From Neoconidiobolus thromboides FSU 785 (taxonomy: Eukaryota > Fungi > Entomophthoromycota): a stretch of 64,000 nt of DNA. The notes beneath the pieces are model-generated. The model made no database searches. It saw only the letters and a list, made by a program, of their open reading frames with translations, and was not told where the DNA came from. Both the position numbers and the translations under genes were made by a program. Below, in pieces: positions 16,361 to 59,197 of this stretch (its first letter is position 1; the number at the start of each line of letters is the position of its first letter). Location: contig MU626288.1 in NCBI GenBank assembly GCA_025603075.1, forward strand, positions 1 through 64,000, written 5' to 3'.

Positions 16361-17401
16361 TTAATTAATTTTTCTAACATTACTAGAAGTCTTCTTTAGT
16401 TTTTGATCAGTATTGTTTAAATCTTGATCCACTTGATTTAATAATTGATTATGATATTCTAATTCATTTCCAATTTCGCTGCCAATTTTATGTTGTCTTT
16501 TTAAAATATCTGAAAACTGATTTAAATATAAATTTTGTTCTTCCATTTTATTTTTTTGTAATTGTAATAATCCTTCATTGTCTAATGCTTTAGTTTCTTT
16601 AGTTTCCGTTATATTCTTACCAAATTTTCTTTTAGATATTGGCTTATTAAACAACTCTCCTCTATCACTTTGTACTGAACTTCTACCACTAGTTGGATTG
16701 GAGTTTTCTCTAGCTGAAGTACGTTGTATTAATTTGTTTAACACTGATTTTTCATCTTCTAATTTTGATAAAATATCTCTTCTTCTTAATTCTTCACCAG
16801 GAGTTAACTGAGTTTTACTTTGAGTTAAAGTTTTATCTAATTCATTAATATTAGCTGTTAAAGTCATACATAATTTTCTAGCTTGAGCTGTTAATTGATG
16901 AGCTAAACTTAAATCTTTATCATTAAAACATTGCTCTCTTTTTGTAATTATACTTCTAATTTCAATAGCTATATTTTGTGTGTTTTTTAATTCTTTTAAC
17001 CAACCTTCCGAAGATATGTTATTATCTAAGTTATTATTGTTTTTTGAAATAGGTACTAATAAAAACTCATTAAATAAATTGGATTCTCTCCAAGCTGGAT
17101 TACTACATAATAAAATGCCTCTTAGATAAACTTCAATACCAATTTGACGATCTTCTACAAAAGCAGGGTCTGCAAAACTAATACATGTAAACCAAGAGCT
17201 TTTTCCTGGTAATTGTTCTGGTAATGGTGATCTGATCTTTTTTAATTTTAAATCTAATTCATAGAACTCAGAATATCGATGTTTAACTTTCCAACTTCTT
17301 ACATTTGTTTTGATTTCAATAATATATTCAATATGTTGGCTAGGTAAATTGATTAATTCCGCTCCAATAACGCTAACGTTTTTAATAATATCATGGCTCA
17401 T
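16361..17401 (-). CDS. VAM7: PX-domain Qc-SNARE (Vam7-like), intronless
   Basis: N-terminal PX domain (YIIEI...VKHRYSEFYEL...LPGK...EDRQIGIEVYL) and C-terminal SNARE motif EEQNLYLNQFSDILKRQHKIGSEIGNELEYHNQLL with no TM anchor. Confidence 0.9.
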   Translation of the reverse strand: MSHDIIKNVSVIGAELINLPSQHIEYIIEIKTNVRSWKVKHRYSEFYELDLKLKKIRSPLPEQLPGKSSWFTCISFADPAFVEDRQIGIEVYLRGILLCSNPAWRESNLFNEFLLVPISKNNNNLDNNISSEGWLKELKNTQNIAIEIRSIITKREQCFNDKDLSLAHQLTAQARKLCMTLTANINELDKTLTQSKTQLTPGEELRRRDILSKLEDEKSVLNKLIQRTSARENSNPTSGRSSVQSDRGELFNKPISKRKFGKNITETKETKALDNEGLLQLQKNKMEEQNLYLNQFSDILKRQHKIGSEIGNELEYHNQLLNQVDQDLNNTDQKLKKTSSNVRKIN

Positions 17402-18429: not shown

Positions 18430-20075
18430 GGATACTTTTATATTAAATTCAGGTTAGAATATCAAATAGAGTAAGAAAAAAAAAGTCAAGATTAAGGAAT
18501 TAATATCGTTCGAAGCTATAATAAAACTAATGAACAAATTAAAAACGAATTAATAAGATTAATAATTAAACAAGGAGTTTCTATAAAAGAAGCAGTAAAG
18601 CGATTATCAATCAATTATTATACTACAGGGATCATAATATCTCAAGGAAAAAGAAATTAAGAAAAGCAATAAAGTTAGGTGAAATCAATATTGAAAAAGA
18701 TGAAAAATTAAAAAAGTTTGCCGACAAATGTAATAAAAAAATCGACAAGTTGAATAAAAGAAAATTAAGTTAGTAAATAGACAAAATGTATATAAAAGAT
18801 TCAGATAAACTATTGTTTATTAGTTATGGTAACTCACTTAGTACTCTTTTACAAGAAAAAGTAAAATAAAAAAATTGTAAGTGCAATAAACTGTTATAAT
18901 GAAACTTGGATGAATTAAGTATCTAGTAAGAAGATGAATTTAGCAAATAAGAAGATAGTAAATTTAATACACAGCAGGACTATGACTTTGGTGCCTTGAG
19001 AGATAGTGAATTAAGTAGCCTTGAAGATGGCGAAACAAGCATACAGGAGGAGAATGAAACAAGTAAAGTCAAAAACCTTCAAAAAAAATGGTAAGATAAA
19101 TAATTTATTATCACTATTCAAGGATCAAGAAATGTTTACATGATGTATTGGGGCAATTACCAGATAACAATAGTAATATAAATGTGATTCTTTAGAAGAG
19201 AGAAAAGATCTAACAAGGATGCAGAATTGGGAAACAAAAGGATAAGTAATTGTTTGATTTTAATGGGACGAGCTATAATAGAAGTCGAAAAGATTATTGA
19301 GGAGAATCATAAATATACTTTAGACCAAATACAAATAATACGTATGATCGAATATGGGTTAAAGTGAAGCTAACTTTAATAAGTGATACATCAAAATCAT
19401 TAAGAATCATGATTAATAACTCAAACAATATTACAGATAAAATAAATGAAGGATCCATAGTATCTAAAAGAGCAAGATATTTAAATATTTTATGAAAAAT
19501 TGCTTTAGAGATATTGATAAATGTTTATTTATTTATCAACCAGGATTCAATTTTTGTTTAAAAAAACTAACTGAGCAATTAATTGGTGAAATGAATATAT
19601 TCCAACTATAAAAGATAAAAGTCAAACTTTAATATTGGGAATATCTTGAAAAGAGACTGTACATTCTATTATACCAGGTGAAATTCATAAAAGCTTTACT
19701 CTTATTAATTTAACTATAAAATTAGCTATTGTTTTAGATGAAGACCAGAAGGTATAAGAACCTCACATAATTTTGGATAATACTAGAATAGATAATAGAT
19801 CAAGTAAAACTATTTTTAAGTGGTACTAAGGATCAATTACATTTTTTAGCACCTTATTCTTGTATATTAAATCCAAAACATCTTTTTTCTTGTATTAAGA
19901 AATTTATTAGGAGTTATTTATTGTGAAATTCAAATGGATCTCAAACTATTGATGTTGATTTAAAAGATATTATTAGACATACAGTTCTAACAGTAAACAA
20001 ATAGGATTCCATAGAACATTTCGAATATATGGTAAAGAATATATTGTTAGCTTTGTATAAAGTTTTATTTGAGCA
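18430..20075 (+). pseudogene. Decayed paralog of the downstream Tc1/mariner-derived gene
   Basis: Fragments with stops and frameshifts align to the 777-aa ORF: SYNKTNEQIKNELIRLIIKQGVSIKEAVKRLSINY, IEVEKIIEENHKYTLDQIQ, DKINEGSIVSKRA, KDKSQTLILGIS*, IILDNTR, LSGTKDQLHFLAPYSCILNPKH. Boundaries are approximate. Confidence 0.9.
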
Positions 20076-20869: not shown

Positions 20870-23203
20870 ATGTCAAATGAAATAACAGATCTAAATAATA
20901 TGCTAGGAGATTATGGGGGTCAAAACAATGGTAAAATGAACAGCGAAGCTGAACAAAAGCTATTTGATTTAGTAACTAATCAAGGAATGTCAATAAAAGA
21001 AGCATCTGAGCGGTTGTGTATTGGTTATAGCGCTGCTTATTATAGTGTTACTCAAGAGAGAATGAGGCTGAAAAAAGTTTTAAGTGTATTAGAAGCAAGC
21101 GCAAAAAAAGATGACAGCCTTATGGAATCCCCAGTTAAGCCTTATAATAAAAAAAACAATAAGAGCAATGAGTGTTTATCAGGATTGGTAATTAGTCAAG
21201 GTATGCCAATAAAAGAAACAGGGGAAAAGGTATTTATCGGCCATTCGAAAACATATCATAAAGTTAAGAAAGGAAGGAAGAGATTAAAAAAGGGCGTAGA
21301 TTTAGGGGAATTAGGTACACAAAAAGATAAAAAACCAGAAGAAACACTTGCTAGGTTTTATAATAGAACAGAATATGAGGTTAAAGAGGATCTGTTAAAG
21401 CTAATGATTAAAAAAGGAAAATCTATAAAAGAAGCATCAGAGGAGCTGTCTATTAGCTATGCTACTGCAGAGGATATTGCTTTACAAGCAAAAAAGAACT
21501 TAGTGGAACTTGTAGCTTTAGGAAAAATCGATTTGGAGAATCGTGTTAATTTAAAAAGGTTTCTTGGTCAAATGCGTAATGAAATAGTTGTCAATAATAA
21601 TAACAATAATAAATTATCGAGGCTATTTAATGAAAAAGGAAACTCTACAAACGAAACAGTAGAAAAGTTGTTTATTTATAATAAAGCTGAAGGTAATTAC
21701 GAATACAACCAAAAAGAGAATTTAAATGCAGAAAAAGTAAGCAATCGAAATAGTAAAGTAATAGGTGCTCAGAAAAATGATGAATCAAATTTACGAAAAG
21801 AAAATGAAATAATTGTAATTGATGATGATGAAATAATTGTAATAAATGATGATGATATAAGTTTTCAAGAAATCCAAGAAATAAATAAAACTAGATATAC
21901 AAATATCAAGAAAGATTTCGGAGTAGATACACAAAAAGACAACGAAATAATTGTAATAGAGGATGATGAATCAATTTCAATAGAGGATGATAAGCTAAGT
22001 TTTCATGAAATTAAAGGAAAAAATGGAATCAAAGATCCTCAAAAGGATAGTAGAATCGATCAAATTAATATTAATAGCTCAATTTTACCAACCAAGAATC
22101 AAAAAATAGTTATAAAGGATGTATCAGAGCAGTTGCTAGTTAATTTCAATGGAATAAATAAAATTATATATCCTCAAAAGGAAGGTAGCATAGATGATAT
22201 CAACATAAATAATTTAATGGTCCCAATTGAAAATCAAAAAGTAGCTATAAAAGATGCATTGGAACAGTCGTCTGCCATCTTCAAAGAAACAAAGGTGACT
22301 ATTTGGAATGAAAAAAAAACTAATACAGAGATAAAGACAGAAAATAAAATAGTGACTGATTATTCAGTTTTAATGGAGCAGGCTACTTTAGAAATTGAAA
22401 AAATTATTGAGGAGAATTGTAAATATACTTTAGATCAATTACAAATGATATTGTATAATCGAATAGGGGTTAAATTGGAGTTGGCTTCAATAAGTAATGC
22501 ATTGGAGTCACTAAAAGTAATATTTAGGGGGTCAAGTTGTGTTTTGGACAAAATAAATGAAGAGTTTATTGTATCTAAAAGAGCTGAATATGCTATGCAT
22601 TTTATTCAACATTGTTTTAACCATATCGATGAATGTATATTCATTCATGAATCTGGGTTTGATTTTCATTTAAACAAAACAACTGAACAATCAATTGGCG
22701 AAGCGAACATACCTGTAGCTATTCCAACTATGAAAGATAGAAGCCAAACTTTAATATTAGCAATTTCTCGAAAAGGAGTTGTACATTACACTTTTTCTGA
22801 TGAAATGCGTAAAAGCGTTAATTTTACTAAATTTATTATAGGGCTAATTACTATCCTCGATAAAGATCAAAGTATGCATGGGTTTCATATAATATTAGAT
22901 GATACTAGGGTTCATGGTGCTGAGATAGCAAAAAAGATTTTAAGTGGCACTAAGCATCAGCTACATTTTTTAGCACCTTATTCCTATATGTTGAATCCTT
23001 CAGAACTGTTTTTTTCATTTATTAAAGGATTTATCAGGACTTGTTTATCCTCAAATTTGGATATATCCCAAGATATAGCAATTGATGTAAAAGATGTTAT
23101 TGATTATGCGATTTCAACAGTTAGTAAATTAGATTGCATAGAATATTTTGATCATATGATGAAGAATATATTATTAGCTTTACAAAGAGTTCCTTTTGAC
23201 TAA
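20870..23203 (+). CDS. Tc1/mariner (IS630/DDE_3-type) transposase-derived protein, intact 777 aa, first catalytic Asp replaced by His
   Basis: C-terminal CIFIHESGFDFHL (canonical IFIDESGF), IILDDTRVH, and FLAPYSYMLNPSE with exactly 34 residues between the second D and the E. Three N-terminal repeats of QG(M/K)xIKE(A/T)xExxxIxY. No TIRs found. Confidence 0.85.
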   Translation: MSNEITDLNNMLGDYGGQNNGKMNSEAEQKLFDLVTNQGMSIKEASERLCIGYSAAYYSVTQERMRLKKVLSVLEASAKKDDSLMESPVKPYNKKNNKSNECLSGLVISQGMPIKETGEKVFIGHSKTYHKVKKGRKRLKKGVDLGELGTQKDKKPEETLARFYNRTEYEVKEDLLKLMIKKGKSIKEASEELSISYATAEDIALQAKKNLVELVALGKIDLENRVNLKRFLGQMRNEIVVNNNNNNKLSRLFNEKGNSTNETVEKLFIYNKAEGNYEYNQKENLNAEKVSNRNSKVIGAQKNDESNLRKENEIIVIDDDEIIVINDDDISFQEIQEINKTRYTNIKKDFGVDTQKDNEIIVIEDDESISIEDDKLSFHEIKGKNGIKDPQKDSRIDQININSSILPTKNQKIVIKDVSEQLLVNFNGINKIIYPQKEGSIDDININNLMVPIENQKVAIKDALEQSSAIFKETKVTIWNEKKTNTEIKTENKIVTDYSVLMEQATLEIEKIIEENCKYTLDQLQMILYNRIGVKLELASISNALESLKVIFRGSSCVLDKINEEFIVSKRAEYAMHFIQHCFNHIDECIFIHESGFDFHLNKTTEQSIGEANIPVAIPTMKDRSQTLILAISRKGVVHYTFSDEMRKSVNFTKFIIGLITILDKDQSMHGFHIILDDTRVHGAEIAKKILSGTKHQLHFLAPYSYMLNPSELFFSFIKGFIRTCLSSNLDISQDIAIDVKDVIDYAISTVSKLDCIEYFDHMMKNILLALQRVPFD

Positions 23204-23492: not shown

Positions 23493-23590
23493 ATATGTCG
23501 GTGTTTTTTTGATTTCATTATTTTTCCATTTTTTAAGTGCTATTTGAGTAGAATAATTGCTAGTAAAATCTTAAAAATACATCTCCATAT
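23493..23590 (+). repeat. Dispersed fold-back repeat, copy C
   Basis: ATATGTCGGTGTTTTTTTGATTTCATTATTTTTCCATTTTTTAAGTGCTATTTGAGTAGAA...AATACATCTCCATAT. Confidence 0.88.
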
Positions 23591-26586: not shown

Positions 26587-26690
26587 ATATGGGGTGCTTT
26601 TTTTGATTTCATTACTTCTCCGTTTTTTAAGCGCTATTTGAGTAGAAAGATTGTTAGTAAAATTGTTAAACAAAAAATACATCCTCATAT
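26587..26690 (+). repeat. Dispersed fold-back repeat, copy D
   Basis: ATATGGGGTGCTTTTTTTGATTTCATTACTTCTCCGTTTTTTAAGCGCTATTTGAGTAGAAAGATTGTTAGTAAAATTG...AATACATCCTCATAT. Confidence 0.9.
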
Positions 26691-32878: not shown

Positions 32879-32984
32879 TATTGGGGACGTTTTTTTTTGC
32901 TTCATTACTTTTTCCATCTTTTAAGCGTTGTTTACATGGAAAAATTATTAGTAAAATTATTAAATACAAAAATACATCCCCATT
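32879..32984 (+). repeat. Dispersed fold-back repeat, copy E (between the COMT paralogs)
   Basis: TATTGGGGACGTTTTTTTTTGCTTCATTACTTTTTCCATCTTTTAAGCGTTGTTTACATGGAAAAATTATTAGTAAAATTATTAAATACAAAAATACATCCCCAT. Confidence 0.88.
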
Positions 32985-35975: not shown

Positions 35976-36081
35976 ATATGGGAGTGTTTTTTTGGCTTCA
36001 TTATTTTTTCCATTTTTTGAGCGCTATTCAAGCGGAAAATTTGTTAGTAAAATTCTTAAATACAAAAATACATCCCCATAT
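35976..36081 (+). repeat. Dispersed fold-back repeat, copy F
   Basis: ATATGGGAGTGTTTTTTTGGCTTCATTATTTTTTCCATTTTTTGAGCGCTATTCAAGCGGAAAATTTGTTAGTAAAATTCTTAAATACAAAAATACATCCCCATAT. Confidence 0.9.
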
Positions 36082-55106: not shown

Positions 55107-55209
55107 ATATGGAAGTGTTTTTTTTTCATTATTTTTTCCACTTTTTAAGCGCTATTTAAGTAGAAAGATTATTAATAAAATTCTTAAATACAAAAATACA
55201 TCCCCATAT
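55107..55209 (+). repeat. Dispersed fold-back repeat, copy H
   Basis: ATATGGAAGTGTTTTTTTTCATTATTTTTTCCACTTTTTAAGCGCTATTTAAGTAGAAAGATTATTAATAAAATTCTTAAATACAAAAATACATCCCCATAT. Confidence 0.9.
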
Positions 55210-59000: not shown

Positions 59001-59094
59001 ACTTTAACCTTATTAAATTAAATTTTGAGCTTGTATAAATTATTTTAGAATTACTAGATAGACCAAAGTTTGAATTTATAACTTAGATGTTTAT

Positions 59095-59197
59095 ATATGG
59101 ATATTTTTTTATCTTCATTACTTTTTCCATTTTTAAGCACTATTTGAGTGGAAAGATTGTTAGCAAAATTCTTAAACGAAAAAATACATCCCTATAT
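59095..59197 (+). repeat. Dispersed fold-back repeat, copy I
   Basis: ATATGGATATTTTTTTATCTTCATTACTTTTTCCATTTTTAAGCACTATTTGAGTGGAAAGATTGTTAGCAAAATTCTTAAACGAAAAAATACATCCCTATAT. Confidence 0.9.

Follow-up and report, generated by a model that had tools for sequence, protein, structure and literature searches.

A Tc1-like transposase gene with a histidine in its catalytic triad and an array of helix-turn-helix units in Neoconidiobolus thromboides: a candidate exapted transposase

What becomes of a transposase gene when one of its catalytic acids has been replaced and no transposon ends can be recognized around it? The question is raised by an open reading frame (ORF) of 777 amino acids (aa) in the fungus Neoconidiobolus thromboides FSU 785 (Entomophthoromycota), which joins an array of helix-turn-helix (HTH) units to a Tc1-like transposase with a histidine in place of its first catalytic aspartate. 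The ORF lies in a stretch of 64,000 nucleotides (nt; positions 1 to 64,000 of the forward strand of contig MU626288.1, GenBank assembly GCA_025603075.1), hereafter the window, and an earlier note made from the letters alone had proposed it as a host-recruited, domesticated transposase. We rate as evenly balanced the reading that the 777-aa ORF encodes an exapted, catalytically impaired, transposase-derived protein kept by selection as a multivalent DNA-binding or chromatin adaptor.

An altered triad in a complete transposase

The uninterrupted 2.3-kb frame described in the earlier note was recovered with exactly the same limits, as were the codons of a triad in which the first acid is His and the other two have D34E spacing. 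The ORF and the features of its transposase part are as follows (pLDDT, predicted local distance difference test; TM, template modelling; rmsd, root-mean-square deviation).

20870..23203, plus strand: intronless ORF of 777 aa with ATG start and TAA stop, encoding an HTH array, then an acidic linker and last an entire Tc1-like transposase whose triad is H-D34-E
22187..22510, plus strand: the paired-type, bipartite DNA-binding domain belonging to the transposase itself (HTH1 aa ~443-483, HTH2 aa ~498-547; model helices 14-54 and 69-118, pLDDT 71-94; matches to Pax6, Pax5 and Sleeping Beauty PAI profiles)
22517..23200, plus strand: RNase-H-fold catalytic domain, aa ~550-777 (Mos1 4u7b, E=3e-11; SETMAR 3k9j, TM 0.79, rmsd 3.5 A; Sleeping Beauty 5cr4)
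22646..22648, plus strand: His593 (CAT) at the first catalytic Asp position, in strand beta-1 of the model (alignments and AlphaFold2 model)
22898..22900, plus strand: Asp677 (GAT), second catalytic residue, kept
23003..23005, plus strand: Glu712 (GAA), third catalytic residue, kept, with 34 residues between D677 and E712

Homology to the IS630-Tc1-mariner (ITm) superfamily was found with Pfam DDE_3 on aa 610-720 (E=5.7e-10, 39.7 bits against a cut-off of 28.6) and with the NCBIfam IS630-family transposase model on aa 502-723 (E=3.5e-15). A hidden Markov model (HMM) of ~340 positions, made from 79 canonical relatives, aligned over its positions 13-340 to aa 440-776 (218 bits), so that the C-terminal 43% of the protein corresponds to a whole Tc1-like transposase (aa 440-777), in which the catalytic domain follows an HTH1 that is degenerate and an HTH2 that models well. 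The DDE domain had been placed in the C-terminal third, where the DDE_3 match does fall, but the homologous part is larger and includes the bipartite HTH.

His593 occupies the column of the first catalytic Asp in three independent alignments, obtained with MAFFT, with the HMM and by a profile search of the PDB. In the last of these, which matched the Sleeping Beauty transposase SB100X (5cr4, E=3e-14) and Mos1 (E=1e-12), the H593 column is that of the Sleeping Beauty D153 block 'SDETKI'. The motif reads 'CIFIHESGF' in the 777-aa ORF and 'CIFIDESGF' in its nearest external relatives. The MAFFT alignment took in about 125 external relatives, 108 of which have D-D34-E and none H-D-E. The ORF retains D677, E712 and nearly every hallmark residue that is invariant among active relatives. 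An AlphaFold2 model of aa 430-777 (79-sequence alignment, pLDDT 83.7) places His593 in a beta-strand, D677 just past a strand and E712 in a helix, and a Foldseek search with this model returned Mos1 transpososome chains, the SETMAR transposase domain and the Sleeping Beauty catalytic domain, each with probability 1.00. The ORF therefore has the homology, the fold and the bipartite HTH of the IS630-Tc1-mariner family, and lacks its complete D-D-E triad.

Transposition by the 777-aa protein has most likely been lost. The earlier note took it as settled that losing a DDE acid abolishes strand transfer; this is established for Ala and Asn replacements, whereas for His we infer it, and the conservation of the His would suit an altered site no less than a dead one. 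A working H-D-E site, forming a metal-dependent nuclease or transposase in which the His would bind Mn2+ or another ion, and which may nick DNA or mobilize MITEs (miniature inverted-repeat transposable elements), nevertheless seems improbable to us. Speaking for it, no motif of the ORF's family is better conserved than the beta-1 block 'IFIHESGF', the His is present in five of the six family copies, and multiplication of the family came after the D-to-H change. D677, E712 and their 34-residue spacing are retained, as are nearly all residues invariant in active relatives, and the model shows an intact fold in which each of the three residues takes its canonical position. Other RNase-H-fold nucleases do use a catalytic His (Argonaute DEDH, UvrC DDH), although not at this position. 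To our knowledge, however, replacement of the first Asp has inactivated every DDE transposase and integrase tested. H-D-E is also absent from the about 125 relatives, and the genome has no terminal inverted repeats (TIRs) at any copy of the family, no DDE_3 ORF within MITE TIRs and no recent copies.

The N-terminal extension

The three HTH-like repeats of the earlier note are present in the 440 residues that precede the transposase, together with two more degenerate units and an acidic block.

20936..21115, plus strand: HTH unit 1, aa 23-82, copied from the first HTH (PAI-type) of the transposase (E=1.7e-25; three-helix module, pLDDT 74-89)
21152..21331, plus strand: HTH unit 2, aa 95-154, with a basic stretch, KKGRKRLKK, after it (unit match and model)
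21368..21547, plus strand: HTH unit 3, aa 167-226 (unit match and model; Pfam HTH_28 and Sigma70_r4_2 below threshold)
21590..21757, plus strand: degenerate HTH unit 4, aa 241-296 (E=1.8e-11)
21771..22024, plus strand: acidic block, internally duplicated with a 138-nt period at 75% identity (repeat analysis)
22091..22231, plus strand: degenerate HTH unit 5, aa 408-454, merging into the transposase's degenerate HTH1 (E=5.4e-12)

Units 1 to 3 repeat with a period of exactly 72 aa (216 nt). In an hhalign comparison the HTH-unit profile matches the transposase profile at its positions 15-55 (probability 96.7%, E=3e-10), and the closest canonical relative, P0003, has a single such unit at its N-terminus; the array therefore arose through amplification of the transposase's own PAI-type HTH. 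In a model of aa 20-235 (pLDDT 62) each unit forms the same three-helix module. A Foldseek search with this three-unit model, whose pLDDT is too low for the purpose, gave no significant PDB match, and a search of the ESM Atlas yielded only sub-threshold transposase-HTH leads. The 'CAP repeat' 8vd6 was considered as a solved tandem-HTH analogue and ruled out, being a de novo designed protein.

The acidic block has no Pfam match. A motif scan found three SUMO-interaction-like motifs in it: IIVIDDDE (aa 314), IIVINDDD (aa 322) and IIVIEDDES (aa 360).

From these parts a mechanism can be proposed for an exapted protein. The ORF is the last intact member of an old, lineage-specific family derived from a canonical DD34E Tc1-like transposase. 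DNA would be bound by the three to five additional copies of the first HTH and by the paired-type bipartite HTH with which the transposase started, the candidate sites being sequences that resemble transposon ends, for example the TIRs of the Stowaway-type MITE, which has about 2,300 candidate copies in this genome. The RNase-H-fold domain, with its altered but conserved H-D-E pocket, may serve as a dimerization and DNA-clamp module, and the acidic SUMO-interaction-like motifs may recruit SUMOylated partners, all to the presumed benefit of the host.

Relatives outside the genome resemble only the transposase part. Searched exhaustively with phmmer, 1.84 billion representatives yielded 792 hits, the top ones from outside the genome being ordinary ~350-aa Tc1-like proteins with 33-36% identity from Logan, JGI and ENA contigs (P0003, P0005-P0011), while N-terminal matches came only from paralogs in the same genome. 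In a word-based search the whole 777-aa protein had no match, the DDE part had one (28% identity) and the HTH region matched a same-genome paralog only.

Family history, constraint and termini

Is the open frame an accident of survival or the result of selection? Five further copies with the architecture of the 777-aa ORF are present in the 24.6-Mb genome, one in tandem with it in the window and the others on contigs C103, C38, C20 and C25.

18475..20073, plus strand: tandem decayed sibling with the same architecture (DDE part ~70% identical in nt; 8 or more stops besides frameshifts; Tyr where the ORF has His)

Stops and frameshifts have disabled all five siblings, two of which also have a MITE inserted. 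The 777-aa ORF is the only open copy of the six, and young near-identical copies are absent, as are siblings with Asp at the first catalytic position. The siblings share 37-47% protein identity with the ORF, 56-65% identity over aligned codons and 65-70% in the best blastn matches. Because the first catalytic position is His in five of the six copies and Tyr only in the tandem one, the D-to-H change is ancestral to the family, which multiplied afterwards, rather than a private lesion of a recruited gene. In a FastTree phylogeny that took in the C103 sibling with X in place of its stops, the H-D-E members form a monophyletic clade (100% SH-like support) on a long stem (0.89); it comprises same-genome paralogs only and is nested among canonical external D-D-E transposases.

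Several lines of evidence indicate constraint. Between the ORF and its siblings the ratio of nonsynonymous to synonymous divergence (dN/dS) is 0.27-0.46, values that are rough because synonymous divergence (dS) is saturated at about 1-2. In a neutral simulation using the base composition of the window, the 777-codon frame stayed open in 3.6% of runs at 2% substitution and in 0.05% at 5%, and the ORF differs from its nearest sibling by more than 30%. Tajima's relative rate test with C103 as outgroup counted 22 unique amino-acid changes in the ORF and 58 in the tandem pseudogene (chi2=16.2), which has thus evolved 2.6 times faster. Selection for coding capacity is well supported, be it at the level of the host or of the element lineage.

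As the earlier note had observed, neither TIRs nor a TA duplication bracket the 777-aa ORF, around which only low-identity AT-rich inverted matches were found. The six family copies have no non-coding homology or termini in common except unrelated MITEs. A ~108-nt repeat lying near all the siblings was tried as the TIRs of the family and ruled out, as it is a genome-wide MITE that brackets no DDE_3 ORF and sits inside two of the decayed siblings.

The same data bear on an explanation without domestication, in which the ORF belongs to an old, low-copy lineage of Tc1-like transposons and is its one copy that has not yet decayed. Past constraint would have acted on that lineage through copies still able to spread or to be mobilized in trans, and the ORF would now be heading for decay without a host function. 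We regard this as possible but doubtful. Six dispersed copies have in common both the architecture and a change at the first catalytic position, no orthologs are found elsewhere, the gene is unannotated, and the MITE copies show that transposition of the Tc1/mariner type once ran in the lineage. C103 and C38, moreover, have few stops and are no faster than the ORF, as expected if they split from a constrained 'master' lineage and decayed later. Against this explanation, the nearest sibling is only ~65-70% identical at the nucleotide level (dS about 1) and yet the 777-codon frame is unbroken, for which P<0.001 after only 5% neutral change; the tandem copy has evolved faster; and there are no TIRs, target-site duplications (TSDs), shared termini or young near-identical copies. 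An intact but triad-defective state recurs, furthermore, in about 21 other old paralogs with dN/dS of 0.2-0.4, which is hard to credit to chance.

Set beside the six criteria for domesticated transposases (PMC13548663), the 777-aa ORF shows the first (homology to a transposable element), the second (no TIRs or TSDs, low copy number), the third (intact coding sequence and constraint) and the fifth (a monophyletic clade). The host-recruited transposase of the earlier note stands as to its Tc1/IS630 origin, its intactness, its want of TIRs and TSDs, its position as sole open copy and its constraint, but not as to the His, which predates the family, nor as to orthologs, none of which occur among the 1.84 billion representatives.

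A number of points weigh against exaptation. The His is older than the six-copy family, a pattern that a transposon lineage would leave as well. C103 and C38 are no faster than the ORF, so several copies were probably constrained until fairly recently and constraint was not unique to this one, and the dN/dS values suffer from the saturation noted above. No protein outside this genome combines an HTH array with a DDE domain among the 1.84 billion representatives or in 5.8 billion clusters, collections whose coverage of close relatives is not known. The N-terminal model is of low confidence and without a significant PDB fold match, the DNA targets and SUMO binding are purely conjectural, and the public annotation has no model for the ORF.

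Tc1-like paralogs, MITEs and known systems

If one triad-defective gene has been kept, are there others? Pfam DDE_3 and the canonical profile agree on one set of intact Tc1-like ORFs in the genome, about 22 in number and 343-555 aa long; these were the ORFs counted in the survey of triads, and further decayed fragments were left outside the count. Many lie in tandem clusters without TIRs, such as those on C225 (6 copies in 27 kb), C162 (3) and C96 (2), and further ORFs of the set are on C3, C1, C18, C39, C52, C271, C618, C185, C629 and C364 (loci L021-L047). In the HMM-based alignment none of the about 22 has a complete D-D-E triad, the patterns being N-D-E (9), D-N-E (6), N-N-E, D-N-D, G-D-E, C-S-E, D-G-E and H-D-E. 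On the tree these patterns are spread over three or more separate clades, with different residues hit within clades, implying at least seven independent losses. Intact N-D-E paralogs have dN/dS of 0.2-0.42 at dS 0.7-1.25. The replacement residue is itself conserved, with Asn in 9 of the 10 members of one clade as His is in the family of the 777-aa ORF. A TIR search around four of the N-D-E paralogs gave only weak AT-rich matches.

The HTH unit, too, is found beyond the 777-aa family, with at least 65 matches in the genome. Among them are five intact proteins without a DDE domain, each made of 5-7 tandem units with a 72-aa period, besides several decayed arrays.

L005:1426-2739 (C99): DDE-less HTH-array ORF
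L007:940-3210 (C269), minus strand: DDE-less HTH-array ORF
L016:1108-3126 (C58): DDE-less HTH-array ORF
L020:583-1764 (C101): DDE-less HTH-array ORF
G000:C29:28.4-29.8 kb: DDE-less HTH-array ORF

HTH-array proteins are annotated as hypothetical only (KAI9295604.1, KAI9291595.1, K502DRAFT_324936), and relatives of them outside this genome were not found. Paralogous ORFs of this assembly, K502DRAFT_324936 among them, match NCBI entries for N. thromboides FSU 785 with full identity.

The MITE is of the Stowaway type, ~108 nt long, with 14-15-nt TIRs (5'-GGGGATGTTTTTTT ... ACATCCCC-3') and TA on both flanks. A first look at the genome gave 2,321 candidates with 80-92% identity, seven of which are in the window.

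2039-2118, 23494-23589, 26588-26689, 32880-32984, 35977-36080, 55108-55208 and 59094-59196: MITE copies

The copy at 23494-23589 starts 290 nt past the stop codon of the 777-aa ORF. An autonomous partner of the MITE was not identified, and no DDE_3 ORF is bounded by its TIRs.

These findings bring in a special case of exaptation, a transposition repressor, in which a dead transposase is kept for binding transposon ends or for poisoning active multimers and so limits the mobilization of Tc1-like elements or MITEs. Dominant-negative inhibition by an inactive mariner transposase and the KP repressor of the P element are precedents, and the observations that agree with it are the purifying selection on about 22 intact ORFs that are all triad-defective through at least seven independent changes, a very abundant MITE of Tc1/mariner type, and DNA-binding modules that have been kept and amplified. 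We think this quite improbable all the same, as no active transposase with a full triad is left in the assembly to be repressed, MITE copies of 80-90% identity indicate no recent burst, and no link was found between the Tc1-like proteins and the MITE TIR.

More broadly, N. thromboides may have turned its whole Tc1-like complement into a selected system of proteins with non-catalytic or altered sites which, with the DDE-less arrays, would form a DNA-binding network on the candidate MITE copies, serving to defend the genome or to regulate genes, with the 777-aa ORF as the member that joins both modules. This is a speculative proposal, and one that we consider unlikely.

Domesticated Tc1/mariner transposases are few and come mostly from animals and fission yeast, and no papers on Tc1-type transposases in Entomophthoromycotina turned up when the literature was searched. 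Compared with canonical DD34E Tc1-like and other IS630-Tc1-mariner transposases (Sleeping Beauty 5cr4, Mos1 3hos/4u7b), aa 440-777 align end to end (33-36% identity) and have the bipartite HTH, the RNase-H fold and the 34-residue spacing between the second and third residues, whereas the ORF differs in its His for the first Asp, its 440-aa N-terminal extension, its lack of TIRs or a TA duplication and its lack of young copies.

SETMAR (Metnase), which in primates joins Hsmar1 to a SET domain, is likewise a single intact mariner-type copy with one catalytic residue replaced and its siblings decayed, and its transposase domain is the best compact structural match to the 777-aa ORF (3k9j, TM 0.79). 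The changed residue is the third in SETMAR (DDN) and the first in the ORF. SETMAR gained a host SET domain, whereas the ORF gained only copies of its own HTH and an acidic block without a Pfam family, and SETMAR is conserved across anthropoid primates, whereas no ortholog of the ORF is known. Binding to TIRs, at dispersed MITE/TIR sites, has been retained by SETMAR, the one Hsmar1 copy still intact (PMC9062482), and the mechanism proposed for the ORF follows this pattern.

CENP-B, the Abp1-Cbh1-Cbh2 proteins and TIGD are ITm-superfamily transposases that have also become DNA-binding chromatin proteins with the HTH kept and the catalytic domain degenerate, and pogo-derived CENP-B-like DNA-binding proteins arose repeatedly, fungi included (PMC4231638). 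They differ in belonging to the pogo branch (DDE_1), in having no HTH array and in being conserved across species with demonstrated functions. In Drosophila, Tc1/mariner-derived genes followed a catalytic-domain pathway (CG14478) and a DNA-binding-module pathway (CG4570, cag and toy) (PMC13548663). N. thromboides has both routes, the 777-aa ORF retaining both modules and the DDE-less arrays only the DNA-binding one; CG14478, however, has an intact DDE triad and orthologs across 43 species, while the fungal genes are limited to one genome and have altered triads. The PiggyMac-like (PgmL) paralogs of Paramecium (PMC6143343) are also a transposase-derived paralog family kept by selection, but they are of the piggyBac superfamily and act with Pgm in programmed DNA elimination, whereas in the fungus no Tc1-like ORF with a full triad was found.

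The kind of gene, a domesticated Tc1/mariner transposase, is already known, and what is new is that the host belongs to the Entomophthoromycotina, that the HTH array derives from the protein itself and that a His is conserved at the first catalytic position. If the exaptation is real, it would be a case of domestication in an early-diverging, insect-pathogenic fungus, and its family lets one ask what chemistry, if any, an H-D-E pocket can perform. More surprising is that triad-defective paralogs have been kept by selection across the genome. With numerous old Tc1-like genes that are selected but have no full triad, alongside DDE-less arrays and an abundant MITE, the genome is a natural system in which to ask why inactive transposases stay, be it for repression, DNA-binding networks or chromatin roles.

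The 777-aa ORF is flanked by housekeeping genes, the VAM7 and PAT1 neighbours named in the earlier note both having been found.

16361-17401, minus strand: PX-domain (Vam7-like) gene
from about 24.3 kb, plus strand: PAT1 gene, multi-exon

The suggestion that the protein is undescribed also held. Its sequence is not in the public protein collection, where only two fragments from the same contig occur (aa 1-81 and aa 583-719), and the gene is therefore unannotated, an annotation gap in the public proteome to which the ORF points. It may have been repeat-masked ahead of gene calling. The C103 sibling (G000:C103:69.4-71.1 kb, L002/L048), by comparison, has a public model, KAI9294113.1 (316 aa), that appears to be spliced around in-frame stops and is probably an annotation artefact on a pseudogene.

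Two decayed siblings each have a MITE inserted at most about 10 codons past the motif of the catalytic Glu, the two insertions being oppositely oriented (L050 on C20, 7818-7913; L049 on C38, 6960-7064), reflecting either independent hits at nearly one spot or an insertion hot spot.

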